NCBI GenBank assembly: GCA_026770705.1
Contig: JANJGN010000052.1
Coordinates: forward strand, 496,001 to 560,000
Length of the DNA stretch: 64,000 bases
From: Isurus oxyrinchus
Lineage: Eukaryota
Direction of reading: 5' to 3'
In this document: positions 18,779 through 50,204 of the stretch, piece after piece
How the letters are laid out: each line of letters starts with the position of its first letter
Numbering within the stretch: position 1 is the first letter of the stretch
Position numbers and translations under genes: made by a program
Notes under the pieces: model-generated
The model's database searches: none
What the model was told of the DNA's origin: nothing
What the model saw: only the letters and a program-made list of their open reading frames with translations

Positions 18779-18895
18779 TTATAAATTCCCATAAACAGAA
18801 TCCTTGGCAAAATCACAGTTTGCGTAAAGATCATCATCTGTATCAGGATTGACTCCGCGGTTAGATTTCATTTCCAGATCCTTCTCAATTTTCTT
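18779..18895 (-). CDS. Terminal cytoplasmic exon with ITIM
   Basis: Acceptor tttctattacag; KKIEKDLEMKSNRGVNPDTDDDLYANCDFAKDSVYGNL*. SVYGNL fits (I/V/L/S)xYxx(L/V). AATAAA at 17830-17835 (minus). Confidence 0.8.
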   Translation of the reverse strand, partial: KKIEKDLEMKSNRGVNPDTDDDLYANCDFAKDSVYGNL

Positions 18896-21800
18896 CTGTA
18901 ATAGAAACAGAAATGATCAGAGTGACAATCAGAGTGATCAGTGTTTAGTATTATTGATCCAAATCGAAAATTCCACCCACAATACATACATTAATTATTG
19001 ACACTGAACAGGGTTTGATTATTGATACTGAACGGGGTTTGATTATTGATTCTGAAGAGGGTTTGATTATTGATACTGAACAGGGTTTGATTATTGATAC
19101 TGAATGGAGTTTGATTATTGATTCTGAACGGGGTTTGATTATTTATTCTGAACGGGGTTTGATTATTGATACTGAACGGGGTTTGATTATTGATACTGAA
19201 CGGGGTTTGATTATTGATTCTGAACGGTGTTTGATTATTGATTCTGAACGGGGTTTGATTATTGATACTGAACGGGGTTTGATTATTGATTCTGAACGGG
19301 TTTTGATTATTGATTCTGAACAGTGTTGGGTGTGAGTTTGGTTGGGTTTAAGAGTGACTGTATATAACATTGCAGATACAGGACTGGAGCAGCCATATCA
19401 ATAACCAGGCTACTGGAGCAGCTGAGAGGCTGGGGATCCTGTGGTGTGTGACTCACCTGATTCCTCAAAGCCCAACCACGCTCACAGTTTTCATAAACAG
19501 GACCTCGATATTCATCAACACGGTGGTTCGATTTGATTCCTGCTTTCCCCTCGCCTCTCTTCTGTAATAGAGATGGAAATGGACAGAGTGACAATCAACA
19601 TGATGTGTATTCGGTGTTGGGTTTGATTATTGGGGAGAGAGTTCCAGATTTCCACTCCCCTTTGTGTGAAGAAGTGCTTCCTGACATCACCCCTGAATGG
19701 CCTGGCTCCAATCTGAAGTTCCGGCCCCCTTGTTCTGGACTCCACCCGACCCCCACCACCCACCCCCACCCGAGGGAATAGCTTCTCTCTATCGACCCTA
19801 TCGAGTGTTTAATCAGTTTGAACCCCTCAATTAGATCCCTCCTTAATCTTCTAGACCCGAGGGAATATAATCGTAGACTGTGTGTAACCTGTCTGCATAA
19901 TTTAACCAGAAAGATGTTCTGTACAACAGACTTGAGTCTCACACCCAGATCTCAATAATCAGTAGAAATCTTTCAAAGGCATCAATCATTGGAATCTGTC
20001 TTTATAAAGTCACAACATCAACAAAGGATGGTGTTGGTGGTGGAAATGAATTCCAATCGTTCCATTACTTACCCAGGACCTGTCTGACTGCTTGCCTGGG
20101 GAGGAACTGCCCATACGCTCTGCTTGGGCTGAATGACCTCTTCCTGTGCTGCTCCCTCTGTGTATTTAATGAGAAAGGGTTGATGTGTCTCTGTGAGTCA
20201 AATCAGAAATTGGGGAACAATTCTGAAAACCCTTTCATTGAAACGTAGGGCCTTAGTGTTGTGTTGTAAACAAACTGTTAACCCTTTGTGTCCTGACTCT
20301 GTGACGTGATTCCTGTGTAAAGCTGAGCAGTCGTTGAGCGAGTTTCAATTCACTGCTCACTCCAGGTGTTGAGGTGGATCTTCTGAAGGAGCAGATGTTG
20401 CTCAGCGCTCCTTAAAAATGTGAGATACTGAACATTGTGTCAGAGGACGAGAGAGAGAATGAGAAGGAGAGCATTATTGAAGATTCGAGAGAGAGTGATT
20501 GAGGGAAAGAATGAGAAGGAGAGCATTCGTGGAGATAAGAGCCACAGAGAATGAGAGAGAGAATGAGAAGGAGAGAATTAGTGGAGATTGGAGAGAGAGT
20601 GAATGAGAGAAAGAATGAGAAGGAGAGCATTAGTGGAGATTGGAGAGAGAGTGAATGAGAGAGAGAATGAGAAGGCCAGCATTAGTGGAGATAAGAGAGA
20701 GTGAATGAATCATGGAAAATGGAAAGAGATTGCATTCACTAACAAAAGAAAGGTTTTCATTTATATAGCACCTTTCACATCCTCATTAGGTCACAAGGTA
20801 TCTTATGGTCCGGGTCAACACTGCCTGTTACAGGACTGAGTTGTGAAACATTGAGTGTTGGATGAAATGTTAATCAGTGAGTGAACATCAAAGCTCTTCA
20901 GGGGCTGTGAAGGGTTTTGGGTTGTGAAAGGTGCTATAGAAATGCAAGTTCTTTCTATAAGGAGAGAAGGTTGAAGAAAACATTTTCGAAAACAACCAAT
21001 TAAACCTTCACACTTACTTTCTCACACACTTGAAGATGAAGAATCCACTCAGTCCAACACTCAAACAGATTCCAGCTCCAAGCAATCCTGCTTTCCATTC
21101 ATTGGAATCTCGCCCTGTAAAATCAGCCAATGAATGACTCCGGTACAGTTTGAGAATGGTTCCCTATGTACATGTAGTAATTCTGAACTTGTGAAGTGAT
21201 ATTGTCTATGCATGAAAGGTCTATACAAATAACATTTATCTATGTAATATTTATTGATAATATCCATGTACATGCAGGTTTCTATAAGGAGGATTCACAT
21301 ATAACAGAGGTGCCAAGCTGCTGAGGTGACACACAGGATTACATACATTCCAAACAGCGGAAACAACATGCTATAGACAGAGCAAAGCGATCCCACAACC
21401 AACGATTCAGATCTAAGCTCTGCAGTCCTGCCACATCCAGTCATGAATGGTGATGGACAATTAAAGATCTAACAGGAGGAGGATGTTCCACAAATATCCC
21501 CATCCTTAATGATGCGGGAGCTCAGCACATCAGTGCAAACGACAAGGCTGAAGCATTGGCAACCATGTTCAGCCAGAAGTGCTGAGTGGATGATCCATCT
21601 CGGCCTCCTCCAGAGGGTCCCAGCATCACAGATGTCAGCTTTCAGACAATTCGATTGACTCCACGTGACATCAGCAATCAGCTGATGATACTGGATACAG
21701 CAAAGGCTCTTGGTCCTGGCAACATCCTGGCAACAGGAAATAATGTGGCTACAAGAGCGGGTCAGAGGCTGGGAACTCTGTGGTGAGTAATTCAACTCCT

Positions 21801-24800
21801 GACCACCCAAAGCCTGTCCACCATCGGACAAGGCACAAGTCAGGAGTGTGATGGAATAATCTCCAATTGCCTGAATAAGTGCAGCTCCAACAACACTCAA
21901 GAAGCTCGACACCGTCCAGGAGCAGCTTGTTTGATCGACAGCCCATCCACCAGCATAAACATTCATACCCTCCACCACTGGCACACAATGGCAGCAGTGT
22001 GTGCACCATCTACAAGATGCACTGCAGCAACTCACCAAGGCTCCTTCGACAGCACCTTCCAAACTCTTAACCTCTTCCACTGAGACAGTTCCAAGTCAGT
22101 GAGGTGTGTGATTTGGAAGCGAACTTGAGGTGTTGGTGTGCCCTGGGACTTGGAACTATATCGGACGTTCCTTCACCATCACTGGGACAAAATCCTGGAA
22201 CTCCCTCCCTAACAGCACTGTGGGTGTGCGTACACCACATGGACTGCAGTGGTTAAAGAAGGCAGCTCACCACCACCTTCTCAAGGGGCAGTTACAGATG
22301 CGCAATAATTTCTGGTCTTATCAACAATGCCCACATCCCATGAGCTAATAACAAGAGAACATTCAATTCTGTGTAACTCACGTTCCACAGTGATGTTATA
22401 AATCCCTCCACTGCTCCATGTTCATTCTCTGCCACACACTGATAGTCTCCAGTGTCCCTGGATGTAATGTGAGGAATCACCAACCACAGCTCATTGTTGG
22501 AACTTGTTCTGTTCATTGGGACATTAAGATGTCGCCACGTCAGGTTAGAAGCTGGGAAGCTCTCGACAGAGCAGATTAACACTGTAGAATTCCCCTCAAT
22601 TATATTGATTGATGAAGCGTTAATCATATCAAGAGAATTAATTGAGAGATTCTGTGGTGTGTCTGAAAACAAATAAAGATCAGTTACTTACATTGACTGT
22701 GAAACACTTTGAGAGACACTGAGAATGTGAAAGGTGTGACATCAATGTAGGTTCCTTCACCACAAAGCACTTAATTCAGGCAGACACTTCAGTTCAGTAC
22801 TGAGGGAGTGCTGTACTGTTGGAGGGTCAGTACTGATGGAGTGCTGCACTGTTGGAGGGTCAGTACTGAGGGAGAGCTGCCCCCTTGGAGCGTGAGTACT
22901 GATGACCTGCTGCATTGTTGGAGGGCAGGTACTGTGAAAGCTGCACTGCCGCATAGTCAGTATTGAGCAAGTACTTCACTGTCAGAGAATAGTACTGAGG
23001 GAGTGCTGAACTGTTGGAGGATCAGTACTGAGGGAGTGCTGCACTGTCGGAGGATCAGTACTGATGGACTGGTGCACTGTCGGAGGATCAGTACTGAGGG
23101 AGTGCTGCACTGTCGGAGGGTCAGTACTGATGGAGTGGTGCACTGTCAGAGGGTCAGTACTGAGGGAGTGGTGAACTGTCGGAGGGTCAGTACTGAGGGA
23201 TTGCTGCACTGTTGGAGGGTCAGTACTAGAGGAGTGTTGCACTGTTGGAGGGCCAGTACTGAGGGAGTGCTGCACTTTCGGAGGGTCAGTAATTAGGGAG
23301 CTCTGCACTGTTGGAGGGTCAGTACTGAGGGAGTGCCGCAGTGTCGGAGGGTCAGTACTGAGGGAGTGCTGCACTGTCGGAGGGTTAGTACTGAGGGAGT
23401 GCTGCACTGTCGGAGCGACAGTAATTAAGAAGCTCTGCACTGTTGGAGGGTGATAAGGCCATAAGACCACAAGACGTCAGAGCAGAAGGAGGCCATTCGG
23501 CCAATCAACTCTGCTCCGCCATTCAATGATACCATGGCTGATCTGACAATCCTCAACTCCACTTTCCTGCCTTTTCCCCATAGCCTTTGATTCCCTGACT
23601 GATTAAAAAACTGTGTCTCTCAGCCTTGAAGATAATTAATGACCCAGCCTCTGCAGCTCTCTGTAGTAAATAATTCCACACATTCACTACCCTCTGAGAG
23701 AAGAAACTCCTCATCTCTGTCTTAAATGGGTGACCCCTTACTCTGAGATTATGCCCTCTGGTCCTAGACTCTCCCACAAGGGGAAACAACCTCTCAGCAT
23801 CTACCCTGTCAAGCACCCTAAGAATCTTATATGTTTCAATAAGGTCAGCTCTCATTCTCCTAAACTCCAATGAGTACAGGCCCATCCTACTCAACCTCTC
23901 CTCATATGAAAATCCCTCCATTACTGGGATCAACCTAGTGAACCTTCTCTGGACTGCCTCCAATGCCAGTACATCTTTCCTTAGATAAGGGAACCAAAAC
24001 TGCGCACAGTATTCTAGGTGTGGTCTAACTAGTGCCATGCATAGTTTTAGCAAGACTTCCCTATTTTTATACTCCATTCCTTTTGAAATAAAGGCCAACA
24101 TTCCACCTGCCTTCCCTATTAACTGTTGAACTTGTATGTTATCTTTCTGATGACCCCCAAATTCCTCTATGCTTCAGCTTTCCAATGTCTTTCTCCATTG
24201 AAATAATATTCAGCTCCTCTATACATCCTGCCACAGTGCAGCAGCTCACATTTTCCCACATTATATTCCATCTGCCAAGTTGATGCCCACTCACTGAACC
24301 TGTCTATGTCCCTCTGTAGACTCTTCGTGACACCCTCACCGCTTGCCTTCCCATCTATTTTTGTGTCATCCACAAACTTGGTGATAGTACATTAAATTCC
24401 CTCATCCAAGTCATTAATTATATATTGTAAATAATTGTGGCCCCAGTACTGATCCCTGTGGCAATCCACAGGTTGCCATCCTGAAAATGCCCCCCTTATC
24501 CCAACTCTCTGACTTCAATTAGTTCGCCGATCCTCTATCCATGCTAATATACTGCCCCCAACACCATGGGCTCTTATCTTATTAAGTAGCCTTATATGTG
24601 GTACTTTACTGAATGCCTTTTGGAAATCCAAACATATTACATCTACTGGTTCCCCTTTATCTATCCTGTTTGTTACCTCCTCAAAGAATTCTAATAAATT
24701 TGTCATGCATGATTTCCCCTTCATGAAGCCTGTGTGTGATTAAATTATGCATTTCTAAATAGTCTGCTATTACATCCTTTATAATGGACTCTAACATGTT

Positions 24801-27800
24801 CCCAATGACAGATGTTAAGCTCACTGGCCTATAGTTACCTGTTTGTTGTCTCCCTCCCTTTTTGAATATGGGTGTTACATTGGCAGATTTCGAATCCTCT
24901 GGGACTTTCCCAGAATCTAAGGATTCTTGGAAGATTAAAACCAGTACATCCACTATCTCTGCATCTACTTCCTTTAATATCTTAAGATGCAACCTATCAG
25001 GTCCAGGGGACCTATCAGCCTTGAGACCCATGAGTTTCCCTAGTATTATTCTCTAGTAATAGTTATTGTATTTATTTCCTCTCCCCACCCCCCTTTTGCC
25101 CCTTGATTATTTAGTATTTTTGGAATGCTATTAGTGTGTTCTACCGTGAAGACTGATGCAAAGTATTTATTCAACTCCTCTGTCATTTCCTGGTTCCTCA
25201 TTATTATTTCCCCAGCCTAGTTCTCTAAGGGGCCCATGTTCACTTTGGTCTCTCTCTCCCTTTTTATATATTTAAAGAAGCTTTTACTGTCCTTTATTTA
25301 TTTTTTGGTCATCTTCTGTTGGTTTTTAAAACGTTCCCAATCCTAATCCTCTGGCTTACCACTAATATTTGTTGTGCTGCATGTTTTTTCTTTCAATTTG
25401 ACACACACCTTAACTTCTTTGGGTAACCCAGGTTGGTTTATTCTCTTCCTACAATCCTTCTTCCTCACTGGGATATATCTTTGTTGTGAGTCATGAGCTA
25501 TTTTCTTAAACATCTGCTATTGTTCATCCACCATCTTTTCTGCTAAACCCCTTTCCCAGTCCACTCCAGAAAACCCTGTCCTTATTCCTTTGTAATTACA
25601 CTTATTTAAGTCCAGCACAGTTGTTTCCGACCCAGGTTTCTCAGTCTCAGAGGGAATGCTAAATTCTACCATGTTATGGTCACTGTTTTCCAGGGGATCA
25701 TTTATTCTGAGATCATGTATGAAACCTGCCTCATTACACATTACCAGATCCAAAATAGCCTGATCCCTGGTTAGATCCACGACATATTATTCCAGGAAAC
25801 TGTCTTGAATACACTCTATGAATTCTTGCTCATGGCTACCTCTGCCAATTGGGTTTTCCCAATCTACATGAAGATTAATGTACTGCCTTTTTTACATGCC
25901 CTCATTATCTCATGATTTATTCTCTGTCCTACAGCCGAGCTACAGTCATGGGGCTGATAGACCACTCCCACCAGTTCCTTCTTCTCCTTGTTATTCATTA
26001 CCTCGAGCCATATGGATTCTATACCCTCCGATCCAAGATCATTTCTTGCTTTCGTACTTATTCCATCTCCTATTAACAAAGCTACCCCACCACCTTTCCT
26101 TCCTGCCTGTCTTTTTGAAAAGTCACATACCCCTGAATATTTATTTCAAAGCTTTGATCTCCTTGAAACCATGTCTCCATAATGGCTATAAGATCAAACC
26201 CATTAACCTCTATTTGTGCCTTTAATTCATTTATGTTGTTCCAAATACTATGTGCATTTAAGTCAAGAGCCATTAATTTTGTCTTTTTATCATTTTCCTC
26301 CCTCTGACACTATTTGCTGATGTATTTTAATGTTTGGACACTGTGTACCCACCTGTCACACACTAGGTATCATCACCAAAACAGCTATCCTGCAATGCTG
26401 ACAAATCCTTTTGCTTTGTAAGCCTACATATACCCTCTCCAGAACACTCTCCCCATCTATTTAGTTTAAAGGCAATACTGAGGGAGAGCAGCACTGTCAA
26501 AGGGTCATTACTGAGGGAGTGTTGCACAGTTGGAAGCTCTGGAACAAGGGACTGCAGCATTATCTGAGGGTCAGTCGGGAGGGAGGTATTCAATGTTGGA
26601 TTGTAAGTTCTGAGGGAGCGCTGCAGAGTTGGAGGTTCAGTAGTGAAGGAGTGCTGCACTGTCAGAGGGTCAGTACTGAGGGAGTGCTGCACTGTCAGAG
26701 GGACAGGACTGAGGGAGTGCTGCACTGTTAGAGGGTCAGTACTGAGGGAGTGCTGCACTGTCAGAGGGTCAGTACTGAGGGAGTGCTGCACTGTCGGAGG
26801 GTCAGTTCTGAGGGAGTGCTGCACTGTCAGAGGGTCAGTACTGAGGGAGTGCTGCACTGTCGCAGGGTCATTATTGAGAGAGTGCTGTGATGTCGGAGGA
26901 TCAGTACTGAGGGAGTGCAACACTGTTGGAGAGTCAGTACTGAGTGAGTACTGCACTGTTGGAGGGTCAGTACTAAGGGAGAGCTGCACTGTCAGTGGGT
27001 CAGTACTGAGGGAGTGCTGCACTGTCGGAGGGTCAGTACTGAGGGCGTGCTGCACTGTCAGAGAGTCAGTACTGAGGGAGTGCTGCACTGTCAGAGGGTC
27101 AGTACTGAGGGCGTGCTGCACTGTCAGAGAGTCAGTACTGAGGCAGTGCTGCACTGTCAGAGGGTCAGTACTGAGGGAGTGCTGCACTGTCAGAGGGTCA
27201 GTACTGTGGGAGTGCTGCACTGTCGGAGGGTCAGTACTGAGGGAGTGCTGCACTGTCAGAGGGTCAGTACTGAGGGAGTGCTGCACTGTCAGAGGGTCAG
27301 TACTGAGGGAGTGCTGCACTGTCAGAGGGTCAGTACTGAGGGAGAGCTGCCCTGTCAGAGTGTCAGTACTGAGGGAGTGCTATACTGTCATAGTGTCAGT
27401 AATGAGGGAGTGCTGTACTGTCAGAGGCTCAGTACTGAGGGAGTGCTGCACTGTCAGAGGGTCAGTACTGAGGGAGTGCTGCCCTGTCAGAGGGTGAGTA
27501 CTGAGGGAGTGCTGCACTGTCAGAGGGTCAGTACTGAGGGAGTGCTGCCCTGTCAGAGGGTCAGTACTGAGTGAGTGCTGCACTGTCGGAGGGTGAGTAC
27601 TGAGGGAGTGCTGCACTGTCAGAGGGTCAGTACTGAGTGAGTGCTGCCCTGTCAGAGGGTCAGTACAGAGGGAGTGCCGCACTGTCAGAGGGTCAGTACT
27701 GAGGGAGTGCTGCACTGTCAGAGGGTCAGTACTGAGTGAGTGCTGCACTGTCAGGGCGTGAGTACATTGCGATTCCTGCTCTGCTCTATCGGTCTCCTGG

Positions 27801-30800
27801 CTGGAAATAAAAGCCGCTGTGTTACTGTTCAGAAACTGTTATTAATTGTGTTCTGGTCACTATTTTCCCTGAAAAACAGATTCTCTGATTGTCATCAAAA
27901 TACCTTTCTATGGATCCTGCTGTACATTATCTACACTGTTCCAGCTAATGTAGAATGAAGGGTGTCTATACTTACATTGCACAGTTAGTACGAGGGTCCG
28001 CTCCGATGAAACAGATGGATATCTCACTCTGCAGCTGAGAGTGTGTCCGTGGTGTTTGAGTGATGGGGTCAGGGTCAGAACAGAAGTATAGGTCAGAGAG
28101 ACACCATGCTGAGTTACAGTGTTTGAGACTGATCCAGGTACGTCAGTGGGAGTGTCCCAGGTTAAGACAGGTGCTGCTGTTCCATTGCACGTTGTGTTGA
28201 AGGTGCAGCTTACATCCACACGCTTTCCAGCAATAATTTCAGCAGGGAATATCGTGGGTTTATCTGTGAAATCTAACAGACAGAGAATGGATCCTTTTAG
28301 ACAAATATAACGTGAAGCATCAGTTCAAATAGAAATCACAGTCCCACACGAGAAAGCATTTTTACAAGGATGATATCAGATCTGAGAGGTTACAATGATC
28401 AGGAAAGATTTTCTTGCTCTTTGGCAGTAGTGTTTCTGTCTCTCAGCTTAATACACGTTCACTCCGAGACATGTGAATTGAGAACACTGGATGAGAGAAG
28501 AGGCTCAGACCAGAGATTGGAGTTAAAAGCAGAATACTGCGGATGCTGGAAATCTGAAACCAAAACAAAAATTGCTGGAAAGACTCAGCAGGTCTGACAG
28601 TATCAGTGGAGAGGAAGACAGGGTTAACGTTTCGAGTCCGTATGACTCTTCATCAGACCAGAGGTTTGAGTTCACTGGCTTCTCATTTCCTCAGTGATCT
28701 GGGTGATTTATCACCTTGTGGTTTGTTGGATCTTGCTGTGCACAAACTGCCTGCTGTGTTTTACATCTGTGACTACAATTCAGGAATAATTTCATTGGCT
28801 GTGAAGGGATTTGGATCCTCCTGAGGTGGTAAATTGCGCTGCAGAAATGCACATCTTTCTTTTATCGATAAGTCAGACTTTTAAACAGGACAGGAGAGAT
28901 TGATGGGAGTGGATAACCTGATAATACAGTTAATGCTTTTCATCATTGATATTAAAGTGAGTATTAGAGGTTGCTTTAGGACTGAACTGGAAGCTATCAC
29001 CAGGTTATTGAGAATCAGACAGTGTGTTATAATAAGCTGCGTTTTGTGTTAATATGTAAACATCACAGTTTGTGTTATTTCCCATTGAGTGTTGAATGTG
29101 AATTGTTGAGTAATTATAACACAGCACTTACCAGAAACGTGAAGCTGGGTTACAGGGTAATAGTTATAGCTCGGACCATTGTCAAATTCTATCCTGAAAA
29201 AATAAGGTCCCGCATCTTCCCGTCTGATGTTGTTTATAATCAGGGAACAGTCGCCATCTTTCAGGTCTCCAGACAGCCAGGTCCGATGGTGGAACCGTGG
29301 TAACTCGTGACTGTGATCCTTGGAGTGAAAGGCAATGGGAGCCCAGGGAATCTGTTTCTCGTTATTAAACCAGACTCCACCTCGCGGTTGGTTTTCCAAA
29401 TGTGATGGATAACTGTAATGACATGGAATCTGTACACACGAACCTTCCTGCGCTGTCACCTCTCGTGGAGTGTCACCTTTCCACTCTTGTGACAGTCCAA
29501 CTGGGGAGAGAAATATCAATATTTAACTCTGGATGGTTTGTGGATCCACTAGACTCGATATCCACTCCCTCCATCACTGGGGCACAGTGGCTGCAGTGTG
29601 GAACTTCTACAGGACACACAAGGAACTCCCCAAGGTTTCACAATGGATAGAAGAGAATCCTGGACACAGGAGTGGACAAGTTCATTCTACATTGGCTCAT
29701 GGTCCTCAGGACCCTGTTTAGTGAAGCCAGTGAGACAGTGTCACTGTGCCTTGTATTATAATGCTCCTGTGTAGCCCCTTGGATTGTTTTTTTTTACAGT
29801 TAAGGCACTATGTAAATATAATCTATTGCTCTATGCTCATCTGGACCATTTGAATTCTTAAGTTCAAGTGGCCTGGTGACAGCTTCATGTTCAGTCCAAA
29901 TGCAGCCTCTAATTATCACTTTAATGTCAATGATTAAATGTGACCCAACACAGTGTCTACAAGACGCACCAATTGAGATCCATTCAGTGCTGATTTACAA
30001 GACAGGACAATGGATTAGGAGCCCTCAGAACTCCCTCCATTATCACCGTCATGAATCACTAATTAGCCTAACATTCCTGTCTGCTCTTCAACACAGCTGA
30101 TTGGCTAATCTGATTCAATCTGATTGGTGCACTTTGGACCTTCATGTTCTGAGGAATCTCTTTGGATCCTCATTGTTTAAGGAATCTCATTGGATCCTCA
30201 TTGTCTAAGGGATTATTTCTGATCCAAACCCCATATTGTTGTATTGTTGATTCCGATGCAGCATTGTAGACTGACTTGTCCCCAAGCTCAGCACTGACCC
30301 TACTCCAGCAGACACTGTGAAACACACTAACAAAGCGCCTCTAGCCTGAGCTCTGCATGTGTCGAGAGAAAGACAAATATACAAACTGAATATTGACACC
30401 TTTACACACGGACAGCTTTACCTTCCTTCTCTCTTTCAGTTATCTTGCTCCCTTATTGAAGTATCTAGCAAGGTGAGAATGGACAGGAAGTGTGACACTG
30501 AACAGCCTGTCTATTCTAGGAGCTGCTGTGCTGTCTTCATGGGAAATTCTGAATAAAATCAGCAAAAGACACATTTCAGGATATTGCTATCAGACACCTA
30601 ACATAGGGAGAGACTTCATCCTCCAGTTTTTATCCCTGATTTTCTACTCAACCTTTTACCACCCTTCCCCCCATCCACACTGACTTACATAGGCTCCCAG
30701 TCAAGCAGTGCCTCCATTTTAAGATTCTCATGCTCAATTCCCAATCCCCCCAACCCCCTCTCCAGTCCCGACCTCTGTAACCTCATCCAGCCCCTTCAAC

Positions 30801-31046
30801 CCTCTGAGATCTCTGCTCTCCTCCAATTCTGCTGTCAGACAGGGAGTCAGTGTATATCAGTGAGCACAGGGGTGATGGGTCATTGGGACTTGGTGTCAGT
30901 TTGTACACTGGGTGACTGCTAAATCGGTTCCCAATCACACTCAATAAGAATGATCTTTTACAAAGACTATTAACCATAAATCTGCCCGAGCTGACAATGA
31001 TATTACCTTGGAGAAGTGACAGGAGGAAGTAAGATTTACCGATCAT
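18779..31046 (-). CDS. Siglec-like gene C, inhibitory architecture (L, V, C2, C2, TM, tail exons with ITIM); 1-nt frameshift in second C2, possibly a pseudogene
   Basis: Exons 31007-31046, 29132-29500, 27976-28272, 22382-22662, 21018-21114, 19457-19561, 18779-18895, all with AG/GT boundaries. Confidence 0.75.
18990..19325 (+). repeat. 24-bp intronic minisatellite (gattattgatactgaacggggttt)
   Basis: About 13-14 tandem units; 8-aa periodic ORFs. Confidence 0.9.
19457..19561 (-). CDS. Cytoplasmic exon with YEN motif
   Basis: Acceptor ctctattacag; KRGEGKAGIKSNHRVDEYRGPVYENCERGWALRNQ|gtgagt, phase 0-0; homologous to the terminal exon. Confidence 0.65.
19905..20300 (-). other. Extra copy of the exon 1 / promoter module inside gene C (donor after 20073)
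   Basis: Near-identical to 9325-9620 and 16060-16350. Confidence 0.75.
20445..20710. repeat. GA-rich ~48-bp tandem repeat
   Basis: gagaatgagaaggagagcattagtggagattggagagagagt units. Confidence 0.7.
21018..21114 (-). CDS. Uncharged transmembrane exon (gene C)
   Basis: ttttacag|..RDSNEWKAGLLGAGICLSVGLSGFFIFKCVR-K|gtaagt, phase 1 to 2. Confidence 0.8.
21340..22345 (+). mobile_element. Internally deleted LINE (same family as 53765-54838)
   Basis: Matches the TNIPILNDGGAQH..DK.EA region of the RT-bearing copy. Confidence 0.65.
22382..22662 (-). CDS. Second C2/I-type Ig exon of gene C (281 nt, frameshifted at 3' end)
   Basis: EGNSTVLICSVESFPASNLTW..DTGDYQCVAENEHG; one base shorter than paralog 48033-48314. 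Confidence 0.85.
22790..23450 (+). repeat. 33-bp minisatellite array
   Basis: Same unit as 32895-35098. Confidence 0.9.
23460..26470 (-). mobile_element. CR1-like LINE, long degenerate ORF2 (endonuclease + RT)
   Basis: LNAHSI..DLIAIMETW, SDHNMV, GNYRPVSLTSV, LDFQKAFSKVPH, LVRPHLEYC. Confidence 0.9.
26475..27765 (+). repeat. 33-bp minisatellite array
   Basis: About 35 tandem units. Confidence 0.95.
27976..28272 (-). CDS. First C2-set Ig exon of gene C
   Basis: 297 nt, phase 1-1; DFTDKPTIF..VSCTFNTTCNGTAAPVLTW..LTPSLKHHGHTLSCRV, with the extra Cys typical of Siglec domain 2. Confidence 0.9.
29132..29500 (-). CDS. Siglec-type V-set exon of gene C
   Basis: 369 nt open, intact splice sites, YFFRIE Arg retained. 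Confidence 0.9.
31007..31046 (-). CDS. Signal-peptide exon of gene C
   Basis: MIGKSYFLLSLLQ+G|gtaata. Confidence 0.8.
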
Positions 31047-35104: not shown

Positions 35105-37670
35105 TTGGAATCTGTCTTTATAAAGTCACAACATCAACAAAGGACGGTGTTGGTGGTGGAAGTGAATTCCAATCGTTCCGTTACTTACCCAGGACCTGTC
35201 CGACTGCTCGCCTGGGGAGGAACTGCCCACACACTCTGCTTGGGCTGAATGACCTCTTCCTGTGCTGCTCCCTCTGTGTATTTAATGAGAAAGGGTGGAT
35301 GTGTCACTGTGAGACAAAGTGGGAGGTGGTTGCTGTCAAAGTATGAAAGCAAACTGTTAAACCTTGGAGTGCCAAGGCTGTGTCCGAATGTGACTAACCT
35401 TTTTCCCATGTAACAGGCTCGAGGGGCTGAATGGCCTGCTCTTGTTCCTGTGTAATGGGATTGAGTGGGCTGAATGGGCCCCTCATGTTCATGTGTAACA
35501 GGCTCAAGGGGTTGAACGGCCTCCTCCTTTTCTTTTCTTACAAGCTCGAGAGGCTGAATGGGCCTCCTCCTGTTCCTGTGTCATAGGCTCGATGGGCTGA
35601 ATGGGCCTCCTCCTGTTCCTGTGTCACAGGCTCGATGGGCTGAATGGGCCTCCTCCTGTTCCTGTGTCACAGGCTTGAGGGGGCTGAATGGGCCTCCTCC
35701 TGTTCCTGCGTAACAGGCTCGAGGGGGCTGAATGGGCCTCCTCCTGTTACTGTGTAACAGGCTCAAGGGGCTGAATGGGCCTCCTCCTGTTCCTGTGTAA
35801 CAGGCTCGAGGGGGCTGAGTGGGCCTCCTCCTGTTGCTGTGTAACAGGCTCAAGGGGCTGAATGGGCCTCCTCCTGTTCCTGTGTAACAGGCTCAAAGGG
35901 CTGAATGGCCTCCTCCTTTCTTCTGTGTAACAGACTCGAGGCGGCTGAATGGGCCTCCTCCTGTTACTGTGTAACAGGCTCAAGAGGCTGAATGGGCCTC
36001 CTCCTGTTCCTGTGTAACAGGCTTGAGGGGCTGAATGGGCCTCCTCCTGTTCCTGTGTAACAGGCTCAAAGGGCTGAATGGCCTCCTCCTTTCTTCTGTG
36101 TAACAGACTCGAGGCGGCTGAATGGGCCTCCTCCTGTTACTGTGTAACAGGCTCAAGGGGCTGATTGGGCCTCCTCCTTTCTTCTGTGTAACAGACTCGA
36201 GGCGGCTGAATGGGCGTCCTCCTGTTCCTGTGTAACAGGCTCGAGGAGCTGAATGGGCCTCCTCCTGTTCCTGTGTAACAGGCTCGAGGAGCTGAATGGG
36301 CCTCCTACTGTTGCTGTGTAACAGGCTCGAGGAGCTGAATGGGCCTCCTCCTTTCTTCTGTGTAAATGGCCAGTCCAAAGGATGTGTTTGATGCTGGGGT
36401 TAATGGCCTCCAACACAATCCTGTCCTCACATGATTAACTTAGTTAGTGACTGGTTACTGGTTAATGCAGGAGGACTATTTATTTTCCCAATCTTTTATC
36501 CATGTGTCTGGTTAGGATCTTTTCATCAAACACAGAGCAGAACCAGGATCGAGGATGTTGGTGTTTGAAATCTGTAACACATCGCACAGTCCGCCCATTC
36601 ACTCAGCCTTCAGGATGGAGGCTAATTGTTCTTTCAAAAACTGAAAGACTGAAATGGTTGTAAGTTGTAGCTTTAGCTCATTCTGTTGTCCAAGCTGTTT
36701 CAGCCATCCAGGATACAGTGAAAAACGTACATTTGCAAGCAACTTTTCACATCATAGCTCCCTCTGTTCACAATGACATTGGCAACATCAATGTAAACAT
36801 GTCACGCTGTAATGACATCCTCCCACCAGTGCTGACACCGTAGCACACCTGTTTTCCTCTGTGTTGTCGGAAGTCTACCAATTCTCCAATCAAATTGTTT
36901 CCCTTTCCCAGGCTGCGATTAGTTTAATATTAAACAATAACTCATAAAATACACATGTTCTCTGAACATATGTTTGACTGCAAAATGGTGAATAATTTAT
37001 AGGGATTTGCTCTGGTCCAATTATCCACTGATCCTGCATTTCCTGAAGTCTACACTGGCTGGTGAATATTCTGTAAACACTGACAGACAGGAAGGTGAAT
37101 AACAGAATGAAAATTAACTCATAATCACGGACACGGTATTGAATTTGTCCGTTATGTCCTGGTACATCATCGAACGATATCTAAAGACATTTACAATCAG
37201 AATGGAGAGAAGGATGTTTCCAACAGTGAGGGACAATTCTGAAGGAGGATGTTCGAATTGAAACCCACAGACAATCATCCTGGATAGATCATTCCAAAGA
37301 AATTCCATCAGATTGTAACAAGAGGTTTAAATCTATTTCCTGGGAGTGAGTTCCTGTGGATATTAGGAAGGTAAATTGGAGTTTTGAATGATTCTCCCGT
37401 TCTGTATTCTCCCCACACTGTGTGTGTCTCATTCTTGCTCAGTTTATAAATTCCCATAAACAGAATCCTTGGCAAAATCACAGTTTGCGTAAAGATCATC
37501 ATCTGTATCAGGATTGACTCCGCGGTTAGATTTCATTTCCAGATCCTTCTCATCTTTCTTCTGTAATAGAAACAGAAATGATCAGAGTGACAATCAGAGT
37601 GATCAGTGTTTAGTATTATTGATCCAAATCGAAAATTCCACCCACAATACATACATTAATTATTGATACT
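35105..37670 (-). other. Direct duplicate of ~16135-18995 (exon 1 module, 43-bp array 35400-36370, 3' UTR, ITIM exon)
   Basis: Same order of elements and near-identical ORFs (18449/37114, 18643/37308). Confidence 0.85.
37444..37560 (-). pseudogene. Orphan ITIM terminal exon
   Basis: KKDEKDLEMKSNRGVNPDTDDDLYANCDFAKDSVYGNL*; no upstream minus-strand receptor exons remain in the window. Confidence 0.75.
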
Positions 37671-41050: not shown

Positions 41051-41054
41051 AGTT

Positions 41055-41589: not shown

Positions 41590-41732
41590 GCAACTTCCTC
41601 ATTTTGTCTCACAGTGACACATCAACCCTTTCTCATTAAATACACAGAGGGAGCAGCACAGGAAGAGGTCATTCAGCCCAAGCAGAGCGTGTGGGCAGTT
41701 CCTCCCCAGGCGAGCAGTCGGACAGGTCCTGG
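41590..41732 (+). promoter_or_regulatory. Exon 1 / promoter of gene F with ETS site ACTTCCTC at 41593-41600
   Basis: Donor GT at 41733; inverted paralog of the other modules. Confidence 0.55.
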
Positions 41733-42182: not shown

Positions 42183-45100
42183 ATAATTGGGAAATATTAC
42201 TGCCTCCTGTCACTTCTCCAAGGTAATATCATCGTCAGCTCAGACAGATTTATGGTTAATAGTCTTCGTAAAAGATCATTCTTATTGAGCTGTGATTCGG
42301 AACCAATTCAGCAGTGAGCCAGTGCACAAACTCACACCAAGTCCCATTCACCCATCACCCCTGTGCTCCCTGATATACACTGACTCCCTGTCTGACAGCA
42401 GAATTGGGGGAGTGCAGAGATCACAGAGGGTTGTAGGTTTGAGTAGGTTACAGAGACAGGGAGTGGAGCGGAGTGATGGAGGGATTGGAAATCAAGTGTG
42501 AAAATAATCACATCGAGGTGTTGTTGGACTGGGAGCCAGTGTAGGTCAGCGAGTGACTTGTGGGGTCGGGGTGGGTGTGTGCGGAGGTGAAAGCTTGAGT
42601 GGAAAATTGGACACAAAATTCAGGGGATGAAGTCTATCTTGTGGCTAGGACTCTGACAGCAATGGCCTGAAATTAGTGTCTTTTGCTGATTTTAGTCAGA
42701 ATTTCCCATGAAGACAACACAGCAGCTCCTAGAATAGACAGGCTGTTCAGTGTCACACTTCCTGTCCATTCTCACCTTGCTAGATACTTCAATAAGGGAG
42801 CAAGATAACTGAAAGAGAGAAGGAAGGTAAAGCTGTCCGTGTGTAAAGGTGTCAATATTCAGTTTGTATATTTGTCTTTCTCTCGACACATGCAGAGCTC
42901 AGGCTAGAGGCGCTTTGTTAGTGTGTTTCACAGTGTCTGCTGGAGTAGGGTCAGTGCTGAGCTTGGGGACAAGTCAGTCTACAATGCTGCATCGGAATCA
43001 ACAATACAACAATATGGGGTTTGGATCAGAAATAATCCCTTAGACAATGAGGATCCAGGGTTAAATATTGATATTTCTCTCCACAGTTGGACTGTCACAA
43101 GAGTGGAAAGGTGAAACTCCACGAGAGGTGACAGCGCAGGAAGGTTCGTGTGTACAGATTCCATGTCATTACAGTTATCCATCGTGTCTGGAAAACCAAC
43201 AACGAGGTGGAGTCTGGTTTAATAATGAGGAACAGATTCCCTGGGCTCCCATTGCCTTTCACTCCAAGGATCACAGTCACGAGTTACCACGATTCCACCA
43301 TCGGACCCGGCTGTCTGGAGACCTGAAAGATGGCGACTGTTCCCTGATTATAAACAACATCAGACGGGAAGATGCAGGACCTTATTTTTTCAGAATAGAA
43401 TTTGACAATGGTCCGAGCCATAACTATTACCCTGTAACCCAGCTTCACGTTTCTGGTAAGTGCTGTGTTATAATTCCTCAACAATTCACATTCAACACTC
43501 AATGGGAAATAACACAAACTGTGACGTTTACACATTAACACAAAATACAGTTTATTATAACACACTGTCTGATTCTCAATAACCGGGTGATAACTTCCAG
43601 TTCAGTCCTAAAGCAACCTCTAATACTCACTTTAATATCAATGATTAAATGTATTGACTGTGTCCATCAATGTTATCAGGTTATCCACTCCCATTAGTCT
43701 CCCTAATGCTTTTTAAAAGTCTAACAATTTGACAAAAGAAGGATGTGCATTCCTATAGCGCCTTACACCACCTGAGCAAACTTCAAATCACTTCACAGAC
43801 AATGAAGAAATTCTTGAAGTATAGTCACTGTCTAACGTGGCAGTGAGTTTGTGCACAGGAAGATCCCACAGAGAGCAATGGGATCAGTGACCCAGATCTC
43901 TGAGAGAATGATGAGCCAGGGTTCCATGAGCTGTGGGCTGCTCCATCACCCACACCCCAGTGTTGGCAATTCAAGGGTCTGGGAGTGAAAGTGTATTCAG
44001 CTCAGTGACACATTCCTCACCAAGTTTGAAAATAGGAAAGTTGCTGCTGATTGTTGTTACCTCTCAGTTCCCATCTCATCCTTGGAAACCTGCTTTCAAA
44101 ATACAAAACCAAGTCTCACATTTCCATAGCGCCTTTCACCACCTCAGGACGATCCTAAATCAATTCACAGTCAATGAAGTGATTCTTGAAGCACACATTC
44201 TCCCCACTCTCTGGGTAAAGAACTTTCTCCTGAATTCCCCATTGGATTTATTAGTGAGGATCTTATATTGTCAGCCTCTGGTTTTGTTCATTGTGAGGAG
44301 TGGAAACACTCTCTCCATGTCTACTCGATCAAAACCTTTCATTACTTCAAAGGTCAAATGAGGTCACCCCCTCAGCCTTCTCTGTTCAAGAGAACAGAGA
44401 CCCAGCCTGTTCATCCTCTCCTGATAGGTAAAGCCTCACATTGCTGAGATCATCCTTGTGAAGCTTTTTACCACCCTCTCCAGTGTCTCCATATCCTTTT
44501 CCAAATGCTGAGTCTGTTCTCCCCGAGCTGTGAGCTGTTCCTCCACCCTCACCCAGTCTGGTCAAATCAAGGGTCACTGAGTGAGAGTGTATTAATCTGA
44601 GTGACAGAGATTCAACAAGTGTAAAAATAGACAATTCTTTAATGATCATTGTAACCTCTCAGTTCTGATATCATCCTTGTAAAAGTGCTTTCTCGTGTGG
44701 GACTGTGATTTCTATTTGAACTGATGCTTCACGTTATATTTCTCTAAAAGGATCCATTCTCTGTGTGTTTGATTTCACAGATAAACCCACGATATTCCCT
44801 GCTGAAATTATTGCAGGAAAGCGTGTGGATGTAAGCTGCACCTTCAACACAATGTGCAATGGAACAGCAGCACCTGTCTTAACCTGGGACACTCCCACTG
44901 ACGTACCTGGATCAGTCTCAAACACTGTAACTCAGCATGGTGTCACTCTGACCTATACTTCTGTTCTGACCCTGATCCCATCACTCAAACACCACGGACA
45001 CACTCTCAGCTGCAGAGTGAGATATCCATCTGTTTCATCGGAGCGGACCCTCGTACTAACTGTGCTATGTAAGTACAAACACCCTTCAATCTACATTAGT

Positions 45101-48100
45101 TGGAATAGTATCAAATGTGCACAGCAAGCTCCCACATACTGCACTTTGTTTATAAACAAACCATTGGTATTTAACTGGTAAAAAGTGAGCCCTGACAGGC
45201 AGTACATCCTTACTACTGACTCTCCGATAGTGCATCATGGACTCATAGACTCATAGACACTTACAGGACAGAAGGAGGCCATTTAGCCCATCATGTCCAT
45301 GCTGGTCAGCAACTCCCTCCCCAAGTGCATCACCTCATATTTTTCCAGGTTGAATTCCATTTGCGTCGTGATCATTTCCCCTTTATATAAGTCCAATTCA
45401 TTTATATACACCACAAACAGCAAGTGCCCCAGCACTTTGCCCTGTGGAACCCCACTGGAAACAGACATCCAGTCACAGAAACATCCCTCCACCATCACCC
45501 TCTGCTTCCTGCCTCAGCCAATATTGGATCCAACGTGCCACTTTGCCTTGGATCCCATGGGCTCTTACTTTCTTGGCCTCTCTGCCAAGAGGCACCTTAT
45601 CAAAAGCCTTCCTCAGCCCATGTCGACCACATCAAAGGCATTACTCTCATCAACACTCCTGGTTACTTCCTCAAAAGATTTGATCAGGTTTGTCAAACAT
45701 GACCTTCCCTTAACAAATCCATGCTGAATATCCCAGATTAATCCTTGTCTCTCCCAGTGCAGATTCATTCTGTCCTTCAGAATTCTTACTAGTAACTTCC
45801 CCACCACCGAGGTTAGACTGACTGGCCTGTAATTTCCTGATCTATCCCTTCCTCCCTTTTTTAATAATGGGACAACATGAGCCATCCTCCAGTCCTCTGG
45901 CACCTCACCTGTGGCCAGAGAGGATTTGAAAATTACTGCCAGGGCCCCTGATATCTCTTCCCTTGCCTCCCTCAACAGCTTTGGATTCATCTCATCCGGG
46001 CTTGTGGATTTATCCACTTTTCAGGCCGTTAAATCCACTAGTACCTCCTCTCTCTGTGTTAATTTCCTCTCATATTTCACTGTCCTCCACCCTGATGTTA
46101 TACCTGCATCATCCTTTTCCATTGTGAAGACTGATGCAAAGTATTCATTGAGGACTGTACCCACGTCTTCCAGGTCCACACACACATTACCTCGATGGTC
46201 CCTAATCGGCCCCACTCTTTCCCGAGTTATTCTGCTGCTCTTTACATATTTAAAAAACCCCTCTGGGTTTTGCTTTATTCTACCCACCAGTGCTTTCTCA
46301 TGCACTCTCTTATCTTTCCTAATGTCCTTTTTCAATTCCCCTCTGCACTATTTATACTCCTCTAGGGACTCTGCTGTATTGAGCCCTCAGTATCTGCCAT
46401 AAGCTTCTCTTTTTTCTCAATCCTAACCTTTATGTTCCTTGTCTTCCAGGGTTCTCCAGACTTGGTCTCCCTCTTTGTCTTTACAGGAAGATATCTGCTC
46501 TGTACTCTCGCTATTCCCTCCTTGAATGCCTCCCACTGCTCTGACACAGTTTTATCTGCAAAGAGCTTCTCCCAGTCCACTTGGGCCCAATCATATCTCA
46601 TCTTAGTAAAATTAGCCTTTCCCCAGTTTAGAATTTTTATTCCCAGCACAAACTTATCCTTCTCCATAACTGTCCTAAATCCAATTGAGTTACAGTCACC
46701 ATCTCCCCTACTGATACGCTTTCCAACTTCCCCGGCGCTTTTCCATATATTAGGTCCAGAACTGTCCCCTCCCTTGTTGAGCTTTCTATGCACAGGCTAA
46801 AAATCTTCTCCTGGATGCAACTTCAGAATTTTTCTCCCTCCCTACCTTGCTCACTAAAGCTGTCCCAATTAATATTTAGGTAGTTAAAATCCCTGAGTAT
46901 TACTGCTTTATTATTCTTACACATCTCTGAAATGTGATCACATGTTGGATTGTCCATCTCTCCCTGACTGTTTGTTGGTTTTATATCTTGAGTCTATGAG
47001 TTCACTGGTTGAGTAAACTCGAATTGCACTCCTTCATATACACTTGTTAGTTGATAAAAACAAAAAAACTGCGGATGCTGGAAATCCAAAACAAAAACAG
47101 AATTACCTGGAAAAACTCAGCAGGTCTGGCAGCATCGGCGGAGAAGAAAAGTGTTGACGTTTCGATTCCTCATGACCTCAGTTCTGTCGAAGGGTCATGA
47201 GGACTCGAAACATCAACTCTTTTCTTCTCCCCCGATGCTGCCAGACCTGTTGAGTTATTCTTAGCTGATGCTCGCTATCAATAACCAAGAGAGACCTACA
47301 TTAGAACAAGCTGATTATTTATTGTAACAGAGGGCAGAGCACTAAATCCTTGCATGCTCCCACAGCCACCTCCAGCTCTAGACTTACAGTTAACCAGTGG
47401 CCCACACTGTCCAGTGATTGGTCAGTACTGTCACATGGTTTATCCACTTGTATTCTCTTAAAGGTACCTGGCACTCCACATTATCACAGGAGGCCTATAG
47501 TACACACATAACAGCGTGTTTGCCTCCTCAGCACTGACCCTTCTACAGTGCAGCACTCCCTCATTACTGTCTCTCTAATAGTGTAATGATCCCTCAGTAG
47601 TGCTCCTCCAACATTGCACTGGTCAATCAGAACTGACGCTCTGACTGTGCAGTTTTACCTCAGCAGTAACCCTCCTACAGTGCAGCGCTCCCTCAGGACT
47701 GACCCTCTGACAGTGCAGCACTCCCTCAGTACTGAACCTCTGGCAGTGCAGCACTCCCTCAGTACTGACTCTCTGACAGTGCAGCACTCCCTCAGTACTG
47801 ACCCTCTAACAGTGCAGCACTCCCTCAGTACTGACTCTCTGACAGTGCAGCACTCCCTCAGTACTGACCCTCTGACAGTGCAGCACGCCCTCAATACTGA
47901 ACTGAAGTGTCTGCCTGGATTATGGGCTATGTGGAGAAAGAACCTACATTGACATCACACCTTTCACATTCTCAGTGTCTTTCAAAGTGCTTCACAGTCA
48001 GTCTAAGTTAACTGATCTGTATTTGTTTTTAGACGCACCACGGAATCTCTCAATTACTTCTCCAGATATGATTAACGCTTCATCAATCAGTATAATTGAG

Positions 48101-50204
48101 TGGAATTCTGCAGTGATAATCTGCTCTGTCGAGAGCTCCCCAGCTTCTAACCTGCTGTGGCGACATCTTAATGTCCCAATGAACAGAACAAGTTCCAACA
48201 ATGAGCTGTGGTTGGTGATTCCTCACGTTACATCCAGGGATACTGGAGAATATCAGTGTGTGGCAGAGAATGAACATGGAGCAGTGGAGGGATTCATAAC
48301 CATCACTGTGGAATGTGAGTTACACAGACTTTAATATTTCTCTCATCTCCGAACACATATACTCAGATGCTCTCCCACGCACACACACACACAAGCACTC
48401 ACAAATGTACAAACCCTAAGTGCATGCACACACACAATCCCACACTCATGAGCACACAGAAAGACACACTCACACACAAACACAGTAGTACACACTTCCC
48501 TGTGAGTTACCTGACCTCCCTCAGTACTGCACTGGAGAGTTCTCCTGGATTCCGGGATATGTGTTCCCATTCATATTTATCGAAGAATATCCAAATTACA
48601 AAGTCTATTCCAGAAACTCACATGCACAAAGATTCCAACAGATACTCCCCACTTCTCCGTGTCTCTCTCTCCTCCTTTAAGAAGCTTCCTAATCCCGAAC
48701 TCTTGCCTGTCCTTACTCCTCCTTATAATGCCCTGTGTCAAATTTTTTGTGTATCTGAGAGAAAGGGAGAGATAAGGAAGTTTAGGAAGGGATTTCCTGT
48801 TAGTGAAGAGCTTACTTCTTTTTCTCACCTTTCCAGTGTTCAGTTTTGCCATCATGTCCAATGACCCTGTTTATAATGGGGGCATCCTATGTAAACGTCA
48901 CACTGTCTTTACATCCTCCTACCAGTGGTGGCACTGTGGTGCTTAAGCTTGCACCTCCCAGCTTTTCAGCCAACTTCACTTCACAATTTGCTACACATGC
49001 TGTAAGGTCATCAAAATTAACATATATCAAATGGTAGATTTGATAATACAGTTTATTGAAAGGTTCATCCGCGCTCTGGGAAGGGTTTACACTCTCCAGG
49101 AAGCAAAAATAGGCTGGATGTTGGAGAGTTCATCTTTTCCCAGAGAGTAGGGATCCTCGGGAATGTGCTGTCAGTGGGTGTGGTGGTTGCTGTCTCTCTG
49201 TTGCCTTCAAGAGGGATCTGGAGTGGTTACTAACTGGGGGAGAGATCATGGAAGCGGAGAATGGTACAGCACAGGAGGAGGCCATTCAGCCCATTGAGCC
49301 TGTGCCAGGTCTTTCAATGTTCTATCCAATCAGATCCACTAACCACCACTCCACTTTGCCCCCATCTTCTTCCTTCAAGTGTTTATCCAATTTCCCTTTT
49401 GAAAGTTCCTATTGAATCTGCTTCCACTGCCCTTTCAGGCAGCACCTTCCAGATCACAACAACTCGCTCTGTCAAAACAAATTCTCCTCATCTCCCCCTC
49501 CGGTTCGTCAATCTGTGTCCCTCTGGTTACCGACCCTCCTGCCCCTTAAATACATCGATACTGTTCACCTCAACCACTCCCTGTGGGAGCGAGTTCCACA
49601 TTCTCCCCTTTCTCTGGGTAAAGATTGGAACTGTTTATTAAGTGGGGCGTGTAAGTCCGTGGGGGAGTCCATCTCGATCCTGCCCGATTCGCACACGCGT
49701 CCGAGATGGATTTCCACCCTGCACTAAACGTTTCCAGAATTTTCAACAGCACAATCCTGTACACAGCGATGGAGAGAAACATTGGACAGGGAGTCCAACA
49801 GCACAATGATCCATTCTCACCAATGTTCCACGCTAAGGGGAAAGTTCCGATTGTCCACTCTTAGAGTGTTTACAATGAAAACATTCATTCCACATTGAAT
49901 CCCAGTGGATGGGTCAATATTACAGCAAATGTTGCAATGATATGAAGCTTGATTGTTCAGCCAGAGTGAGAGATTGAAAGCGGAGAGTCAGTGATGATTT
50001 CTTTCTGTGTGTTCTCTAGACAGTGGAGGAGAGATTCTGCATGTGATCCTGATCCTGGGAATACGAGCTGTGATATTCCTTGTGGCTGTGGTTATCACTA
50101 TCTTCTGGAGTCTGTGTCTGGGAGAGACAAACAGTGAAAGGAAGTCGACAGACTGTTTGAAGCTTTGTACAGCAACAATCTGGTCAGTCAGTGCGGACAA
50201 ATAA
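42183..50204 (+). CDS. Siglec-like gene F, activating architecture (L, V, C2, C2, Arg-TM, Tyr-free tail); start codon is ATA, possibly a pseudogene
   Basis: Exons 42183-42222, 43087-43455, 44781-45068, 48033-48314, 50020-50204 splice into one open frame; AATAAA at 51239-51244. Confidence 0.75.
43087..43455 (+). CDS. Siglec-type V-set exon of gene F
   Basis: 369 nt open; 6 aa differences from the gene C V exon. Confidence 0.9.
44781..45068 (+). CDS. First C2-set exon of gene F
   Basis: 288 nt using acceptor tttcacag; DKPTIFP..SCRVRYPSVSSERTLVLTVL|gtaagt. Confidence 0.85.
45240..46980 (-). mobile_element. CR1-like LINE, internally deleted
   Basis: GNYRPVSLTSVVGKLL, QHGFVKGRSCLTNL, SGVPQG. 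Confidence 0.85.
47525..47900 (-). repeat. 33-bp minisatellite array
   Basis: Same relative position upstream of the second C2 exon as 22790-23450. Confidence 0.85.
48033..48314 (+). CDS. Second C2/I-type Ig exon of gene F
   Basis: 282 nt, phase 1-1; ICSVESSPASNLLW..DTGEYQCVAENEHG. Confidence 0.9.
50020..50204 (+). CDS. TM/terminal exon with intramembrane Arg (gene F)
   Basis: SGGEILHVILILGIRAVIFLVAVVITIFWSLCLGETNSERKSTDCLKLCTATIWSVSADK*. Confidence 0.8.

Follow-up and report, generated by a model that had tools for sequence, protein, structure and literature searches.

Paired Siglecs are regarded as a response of primates to pathogens that disguise themselves with sialic acid. The closest described systems are the primate pairs SIGLEC5/SIGLEC14 and SIGLEC11/SIGLEC16, in which a partner with an immunoreceptor tyrosine-based inhibitory motif (ITIM) and a short-tailed partner with a basic residue in its membrane span carry near-identical ectodomains on neighbouring genes. 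The 5′ parts of these pairs are homogenised by gene conversion, and Siglec-14 is itself built as V-C2-C2 with a membrane arginine (general knowledge; PMC4042635, PMC13358205). In a recent review, paired Siglecs are presented as a feature of mammals (PMC13358205), and a study of teleost Siglecs reports fish genomes without inhibitory CD33-related members (PMC7226832). Here we describe a 64-kb stretch of the genome of the shark Isurus oxyrinchus (hereafter the window, meaning the whole stretch analysed, which contains no N and is rich in repeats), in which two head-to-head genes, C on the minus strand and F on the plus strand, join almost the same Siglec-type ectodomain to an inhibitory-type and an activating-type end, respectively.

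The comparison with the primate pairs holds for the division of labour between an ITIM partner and a basic-membrane-span, short-tail partner, for the near-identical ectodomains on neighbouring genes and for the homogenised 5′ parts. Unlike the primate pairs, the shark V domains form a separate clade, the inhibitory tail reads YxN-YxN-ITIM rather than ITIM plus ITIM-like motif, the genes lie head to head and both copies are defective. A shared ectodomain linked either to an ITIM or to signalling through a charged membrane span or an ITAM (immunoreceptor tyrosine-based activation motif), together with rapid birth-and-death evolution and pseudogenes, also characterises the KIR, LILR, PILR, CEACAM1/3 and Xenopus CEACAM pairs (PMC5112662); those receptors draw on other Ig domain families, whereas the shark ligand domain is of the Siglec type.

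A first interpretation made from the letters alone, the sequence-only reading, had proposed C and F as a pair. On the evidence below, we consider it quite likely that the window cuts through an extensive cluster of Siglec-type receptor genes that is specific to elasmobranchs, in which inhibitory and activating types occur side by side, gene conversion keeps the ectodomains alike and copies such as C and F have been disabled. Translated searches with the exons find five Siglec-type V exons in the window (A, B, D and C on the minus strand, F on the plus strand), two first-C2 exons (C2a; in C and F) and three second-C2 exons (C2b; in C and F, with half an exon in D). The Ig exons have AG/GT borders and phase 1 in every case, and a pattern scan of the window reveals no Ig exon besides these.

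Siglec-type V domains

Searches and fold prediction were carried out exon by exon and not on a spliced protein. The 17 best sequence matches of the F V exon among solved structures are all Siglecs, headed by Siglec-5 (1e-14) and followed by MAG, Siglec-7, Siglec-8, CD33, Siglec-10 and sialoadhesin. Pfam assigns both a V-set domain and the CD22-like first Ig domain (Ig_CD22) to the V exons, and C2-set and Ig domains to the others. A fold model of the V domain, derived from 32 homologues, reached a predicted local distance difference test score (pLDDT) of 92.5; the top matches listed by Foldseek are all Siglec V domains, with template modelling (TM) scores of 0.80-0.90, and the first non-Siglec appears at rank 47 with a TM score of 0.72. 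The sequence-only reading had called these receptors Siglec-like and had counted a grouping of the V domains with non-Siglec families among the grounds for abandoning the idea; sequence matches, Pfam and fold instead all lead to Siglecs.

The arginine in question is that of the FFRIE motif of the shark V domain, which aligns with the arginine of FFRVE in Siglec-5. In Siglecs this residue, on strand F, binds the carboxylate of sialic acid and is the essential one. It is present in all five V exons of the window and, as R102, is nearly invariant in the 32 V homologues, in which C84 is invariant and C21 and C26 nearly so. The C2a exon carries three cysteines, and the Siglec-type cysteine pattern of V and first C2 is thus present at the level of sequence, with the interdomain bond predicted only. 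MAG/Siglec-4, sialoadhesin, CD22 and Siglec-15 likewise share the V-set fold, the essential arginine and the cysteine pattern in V and first C2 but differ in domain number and tails; two of them, MAG and sialoadhesin, rank high among the matches of the shark V domain in both sequence and fold. By sequence and by modelled fold, then, the shark family is of the Siglec type, and its V domains are predicted to bind sialic acid.

Could the fold and its arginine have been kept for a ligand other than host sialic acid, for instance a protein or a pathogen? Variation among the V exons of the window is concentrated in the C-C′ region, which could equally reflect another ligand, and several mammalian Siglecs bind non-sialylated ligands (general knowledge; PMC13358205). 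Set against this, the arginine, the N-terminal tryptophan and the three-cysteine pattern are kept in all five V exons, even that of the pseudogene D, and in the 32 homologues, and the closest folds are ligand-bound Siglec V domains. We therefore regard a ligand of another kind as unlikely.

Genes C and F

The two genes diverge, as the sequence-only reading had it, and their leader exons lie 11.1 kb apart where it had estimated about 10 kb. Every exon it had named for C and F was located, with phase-1 AG/GT borders, and its counts of amino acid differences were reproduced (six in V, four in C2a with the junction codon counted, and 12 in C2b). The motifs YEN, YAN and SVYGNL and the sequence LILGIRAVIFLV were likewise recovered where it had placed them. 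Its exon set for C nevertheless needs an addition, namely a cytoplasmic exon at 20157-20073 that had been overlooked.

The membrane exon of C is uncharged and that of F carries an arginine in the middle of the span, followed by a short tail with no tyrosine, in agreement with the sequence-only reading. Translated searches of the window found neither C-type tail exons downstream of F nor an Arg exon inside C. The tail of C contains EYRG, VYEN and LYAN together with a single C-terminal ITIM, SVYGNL, which fits the consensus [SIVL]xYxx[ILV]; it does not show the pattern of CD33-related Siglecs, with a membrane-proximal ITIM and a distal ITIM-like motif.

A position at 30574, suggested as the leader of C by scans for ATG and hydrophobicity, proved false, and the true leader was found via homologues. 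A 24-nt repeat occupies 18994-19321, beside the stop of C. The exons of both genes and of the neighbouring copies are collected in Table 1.

Table 1 Exons of genes C and F and of neighbouring copies in the window
Feature	Position	Strand	Remarks
C leader exon (MIGKSYFLLSLLQ, phase-1 donor)	31007..31046	-	Identical to N termini of P0003 (Cetorhinus) and P0016 (Carcharodon)
C V-set exon, Siglec type, FFRIE Arg	29132..29500	-	Pfam V-set and Ig_CD22; 96.2% nt identity to F V
C first C2 exon (C2a), three Cys	27976..28263	-	Pfam C2-set_2; 98.6% identity to F
C second C2 exon (C2b), 1-nt deletion near 22395	22382..22662	-	94% nt identity to F
C membrane exon, uncharged, phase-2 end at 21018	21018..21114	-	97% identity over 30 amino acids to Carcharodon P0016
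C cytoplasmic exon (GSSTGRGH...SDRSW), overlooked at first reading	20073..20157	-	Matched by tails of P0016 and P0007; AG/GT borders
C cytoplasmic exon with EYRG and VYEN tyrosines	19457..19561	-	Comparable exon in Chiloscyllium P0007
C last exon: LYAN, C-terminal ITIM SVYGNL, stop	18779..18895	-	SVYGNL fits the ITIM consensus
F leader-like exon, ATA for ATG	42183..42222	+	5 of 40 nt unlike C
F V-set exon, Siglec type, extra Cys (PSC)	43087..43455	+	Sequence, Pfam, fold and homologue comparison
F first C2 exon (C2a)	44781..45068	+	Pfam; compared with C
F second C2 exon (C2b)	48033..48314	+	Pfam; X18 contig joins its end to 50020
F membrane exon, central Arg, short tail; likely 3′ untranslated region to ~51200	50020..50204	+	Homologues, contigs
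D (pseudogene) V exon, stop at 15011-15009	14654..15028	-	Half of C2b left at 14274-14123
D (pseudogene) Arg membrane exon, second copy	12267..12450	-	98.9% to F; frame as in other sharks
B leader exon, intact	9002-9041	-	MIGKSYFLLSLLQ-type
B V exon, intact	3924..4310	-	82% to F
A V exon, without a leader of its own	268..636	-	98.1% to F; remainder beyond the window
Orphan ITIM exon copy	37444..37560	-	98% identity

Probable gene conversion across the cluster

The sequence-only reading held that C and F combine near-identical ectodomains with unrelated membrane and tail ends and that 5′ gene conversion keeps the ligand domains alike. The identities of the three Ig exons listed in Table 1 agree with the first of these statements, and inverted homology between the genes begins 0.9 kb upstream of the leader and ends 29 nt past C2b, with none beyond. 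The second rests on tract-by-tract identity and on the relations among exons. Identity between C and F per 100 aligned nucleotides ranges from 67 to 100% (heterogeneity chi-square 361, 35 degrees of freedom), and a 400-nt intron tract that is 98-100% identical adjoins tracts at 69-70%. Synonymous divergence is 0.094 in V and 0.013 in C2a.

The exon relations point in more than one direction. The V exon of F is 98.1% identical to that of A, as against 96.2% to that of C, whereas the 3′ 3.8 kb of F is paralogous to D (88% overall and 98.9% in the membrane exon), the V exon of which is only 80% identical to that of F. Directly after the V exon of D, the intron is again 94-95% identical to its counterparts in A, C and F. 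One of the six V differences between C and F involves a cysteine, the motif being PSC in A and F and PSH in C. Among homologues, this extra cysteine occurs in five of the six V domains that stand behind another V and in none of 17 first or lone V domains; because it marks V domains in the second position, the V exon of F is of the ‘second V’ kind and was probably copied from an exon like A.

The same inverted homology, which starts upstream of the leader and stops shortly after the final Ig exon, might be read as the trace of a simple inverted duplication of recent date whose 3′ end was later replaced, with neither ongoing conversion nor selection for a matched pair, and the cluster is indeed full of tandem duplication units. 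Such an origin would leave unexplained why tracts of 100-400 nt with 0-2% divergence abut tracts with 25-33%, why synonymous divergence differs so much between V and C2a and why F is closest to A by its V exon and to D by its 3′ region, and we hold it to be very unlikely. The mosaic fits repeated gene conversion within the cluster rather than within an exclusive two-gene pair, as far as sequence comparison can tell. The pairing of C and F proposed at first reading is accordingly only partly retained: their ectodomains are near-identical and their ends opposite in type, but the pair is neither isolated nor exclusive, given the five V exons, the second Arg membrane exon, the orphan ITIM exon and the closer ties of F to A and D.

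Lesions in C and F

Both genes are defective in this assembly, as the sequence-only reading had noted. In C, one nucleotide is missing near 22395, 13 nt before the donor of C2b, and the shifted frame meets a stop 17 codons into the membrane exon (open reading frame 21061-21273). In F, ATA stands in place of the start codon, with an in-frame stop eight codons upstream and no other in-frame ATG, and an extra base at 50103, by comparison with copy D and with homologues P0006, P0023 and P0074, alters the short tail and leaves the membrane span and its arginine unaffected. A 655-bp segment upstream of V, present in C and absent from F, was considered as a lesion of F and rejected, being intronic, with ATCCA microhomology at its ends and no exon inside.

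It might be argued that the pair is functional all the same, the lesions being assembly errors or null alleles of a single haplotype. They are few, with one or two small ones per gene, the Ig exons are all open, and the ratio of nonsynonymous to synonymous divergence (dN/dS) in V is 0.26-0.37. C could in principle also be rescued by skipping C2b to give a V-C2-membrane-ITIM receptor; this is conceivable because the lesion lies in a symmetric (phase 1/1) exon and because homologue P0016 of Carcharodon is of the form V-C2-membrane-tail, without the second C2 exon. The extra base of F, moreover, is absent from every contig placed there. On the other side, the leader of F looks like the product of neutral decay rather than of a single error, since besides the lost ATG it differs from C by S>Y and F>C in the hydrophobic core, and the ATG>ATA change is a substitution and hence unlikely to be an assembly error. 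A low dN/dS can also be explained by conversion from intact paralogues, and D, plainly a pseudogene, attests that decay is common in the cluster. We judge a functional pair to be rather unlikely.

Neither partner is thus intact in the window, and what is seen of expression is splicing at the level of the family, in a related species. Judging from the assembled sequence, the pair of C and F probably does not work, and the two genes are most likely young pseudogenes, null alleles or conversion donors.

Splice joins in public runs

Contigs of four public runs were placed on 47950-51550 only. One contig of X18, a run from a related species, is 674 nt long and links 48313/4 with 50020, and so precisely the end of C2b with the beginning of the Arg exon, with a GT..AG intron between them. 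Its match to F begins at 48162, which corresponds to the start of the half exon of D. The contigs of X17 and X18 span the exons and about 1.2 kb past the Arg exon while the unique parts of the introns stay uncovered, and those of X17 and X19 stop no more than 2 nt from where the Arg exon begins. Run X5, from the same species (93 million letters), spans the introns as well and is not RNA evidence. The sequence-only reading had staked its case on transcripts that join Ig to membrane or tail exons in this or a related species. The X18 contig supplies such a join to the Arg exon, and both kinds of join occur in annotated shark proteins, with the reservation that the RNA status of the runs is a guess.

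As an observation in its own right, X5 holds half of the sampled words of an 8.2-kb stretch of F, introns included, at very high depth on the Ig exon, and resembles a targeted or clone-based data set of the F locus rather than random DNA or RNA.

Several of these points, taken with others, weigh against the reading of the window favoured here. Neither C nor the 5′ part of F is reached by the run contigs. With an identity to F of about 94% and another 1-nt deletion, at 50048, the X18 contig probably derives from a paralogue, possibly a transcribed pseudogene. The deletion in C sits in a short run of C and is known from the assembly alone. No run placed on 47950-51550, X5 from the same species included, shows the extra base at 50103; this base may be confined to this haplotype or reflect an error of assembly. 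Finally, the ITIM of C is the last motif of the protein, and its -2 residue is S, A or P in homologues.

Homologues in other sharks

Among 1.8 billion representative proteins, 31 matches fall below 1e-30. The close homologues are all elasmobranch, which bears out the earlier guess of a shark genome, and come from genera that include Scyliorhinus, Carcharodon, Cetorhinus, Mustelus, Chiloscyllium, Hemiscyllium, Stegostoma, Rhincodon, Pristis and Hypanus, with Cetorhinus and Carcharodon nearest. The annotated shark homologues share the leader, V, C2, membrane and tail exons of the window genes, with identities of 67-97% according to the exon; their names are automatic database annotation.

Both ends seen in the window are found joined to Ig exons in these proteins. 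P0007 (Chiloscyllium) and P0016 (Carcharodon) carry the C-type membrane and tail exons, and P0006 and P0074 (Scyliorhinus torazame) and P0023 (Chiloscyllium) the Arg membrane exon with the short tail intact. Relatives also possess a third type of tail that is not in the window, with LLYxx[IV] (P0003, P0018) and, in several models such as P0012, TEYAQI. A further observation concerns P0009 of Pristis pectinata, annotated as ‘myelin-associated glycoprotein-like’ and belonging to the same V clade, the tail of which itself bears a full ITAM-like motif (YQEL and YSEL, seven residues apart) and so would offer a third route to an activating form.

In a tree of V domains, of unknown root and with few named references, 29 rows from elasmobranchs fall into a single clade (98/97), separate from marmot Siglec-12, turtle rows and MAG-like rows of bony fish and sharks. 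B clusters with the V domain that comes first in a Cetorhinus protein, and A, C and F with the one that comes second; the MAG-like protein of the shark Heptranchias lies outside the clade that holds the window genes. With the same reservations about root and references, this separate clade lends no support to membership of the shark V domains in the CD33-related group. Of the two origins that the sequence-only reading had left open, independent evolution fits the elasmobranch clade better and great antiquity less well.

The paired architecture of shark Siglec-type receptors is conserved and, because the elasmobranch V domains form a clade of their own, probably arose independently of the primate pairs. 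To judge from the papers searched, it is also new to the literature, in that searches on shark, elasmobranch, cartilaginous fish, Chondrichthyes and elephant shark Siglecs returned no description of the family or of its pairing, and the genes of the window are new, damaged members of an automatically named shark family. Going beyond the window, we lean modestly towards the view that cartilaginous fish evolved a large Siglec-type family, independently of mammals, in which ligand domains subject to gene conversion receive membrane and tail exons in the manner of cassettes (the Arg exon and two types of ITIM tail), with matched activating/inhibitory pairs at least as old as the split between Carcharhiniformes, Orectolobiformes and Lamniformes.

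If this is true, evolution would have arrived more than once at a sensor of sialic acid fitted with a brake and an accelerator, and the shark pairs would predate the primate examples by hundreds of millions of years. It would also overturn the textbook view that ‘fish’ lack inhibitory Siglecs in the style of the CD33-related group. With its ITIM and Arg-membrane partners, its conversion and its rapid gene birth and death, the shark family would offer a second, independent system in which to study how pairs evolve. To this the window adds a dissected example, including the decay of copies, although its own two genes are probably non-functional.

Proposed mechanism

We propose the following model. 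By analogy with the ITIMs and basic membrane residues of mammalian receptors, from which we infer ligand, adaptor, phosphatase and cell type, a receptor of type C would present a Siglec V domain with the canonical arginine on two C2 domains, followed by an uncharged span, two YxN tyrosines and a C-terminal ITIM that may recruit SHP-type phosphatases. A receptor of type F would present the same ectodomain, and its membrane arginine would pair with a membrane aspartate of an ITAM adaptor such as DAP12 or FcR-gamma; a literature search for DAP12 in cartilaginous fish yielded nothing usable. Patchy gene conversion among members of the cluster would keep the ectodomains alike. C as assembled is unable to read from C2b into its membrane exon and F lacks a start codon, so that the function would be carried by intact paralogues elsewhere in the cluster.

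Neighbouring copies and other features of the window

The leader sequence occurs four times in the window, in C, B, D and F; that of D, from 15771, contains a stop. A and B share one leader and probably belong to a single gene that encodes two successive V domains, an arrangement known from Cetorhinus P0003 and from models of other sharks. The orphan ITIM exon, with the surrounding 37671-35100, is a paralogue of the 3′ end of C and of the spacer between C and D, 82-86% identical over 2.5 kb downstream, and is thus what is left of another inhibitory gene that lay between C and F.

An element of about 300 nt, containing a copy of the C cytoplasmic exon with AG/GT sites, lies some 450-530 nt upstream of every leader exon. 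Copies are found at 41603-41897, 31497-31583, 16225-16299, 9495-9569 and 35189-35281 (the true exon being that at 20073-20157), and are 96-100% identical to one another, more so than the coding exons. An acceptor-like site is also present just upstream of the leader exons. The element could be a 5′ exon, part of a promoter or a conversion hot spot.

On the minus strand at 57364-57480 lies an exon for an eight-cysteine peptide (CRFCCNCC...CGICC, then a stop), which matches Pfam Hepcidin (E 3e-7, above the curated cut-off). Its sequence suggests the final exon of a hepcidin-like gene lying within the Siglec cluster; exons upstream of it did not turn up in a simple scan.

The introns and spacers of the cluster contain a 33-nt satellite, in arrays of up to 67 copies, at 22794-23451, 26476-27765, 31857-32172, 32898-35098, 47526-47900 and 51588-51970, and also near 9850-10875, 57941-58266 and 60230-60600, and a 43-nt repeat is found at 35409-36365. 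Retroelement debris is spread over 38477-40735 (minus strand), 45283-46800, 23553-25031 and 52662-54534. The retroelement at 38.4-40.7 kb, between C and F, has a protease-like open reading frame with an aspartyl protease motif (39857-40138), and reverse-transcriptase fragments lie in the second intron of F and elsewhere.

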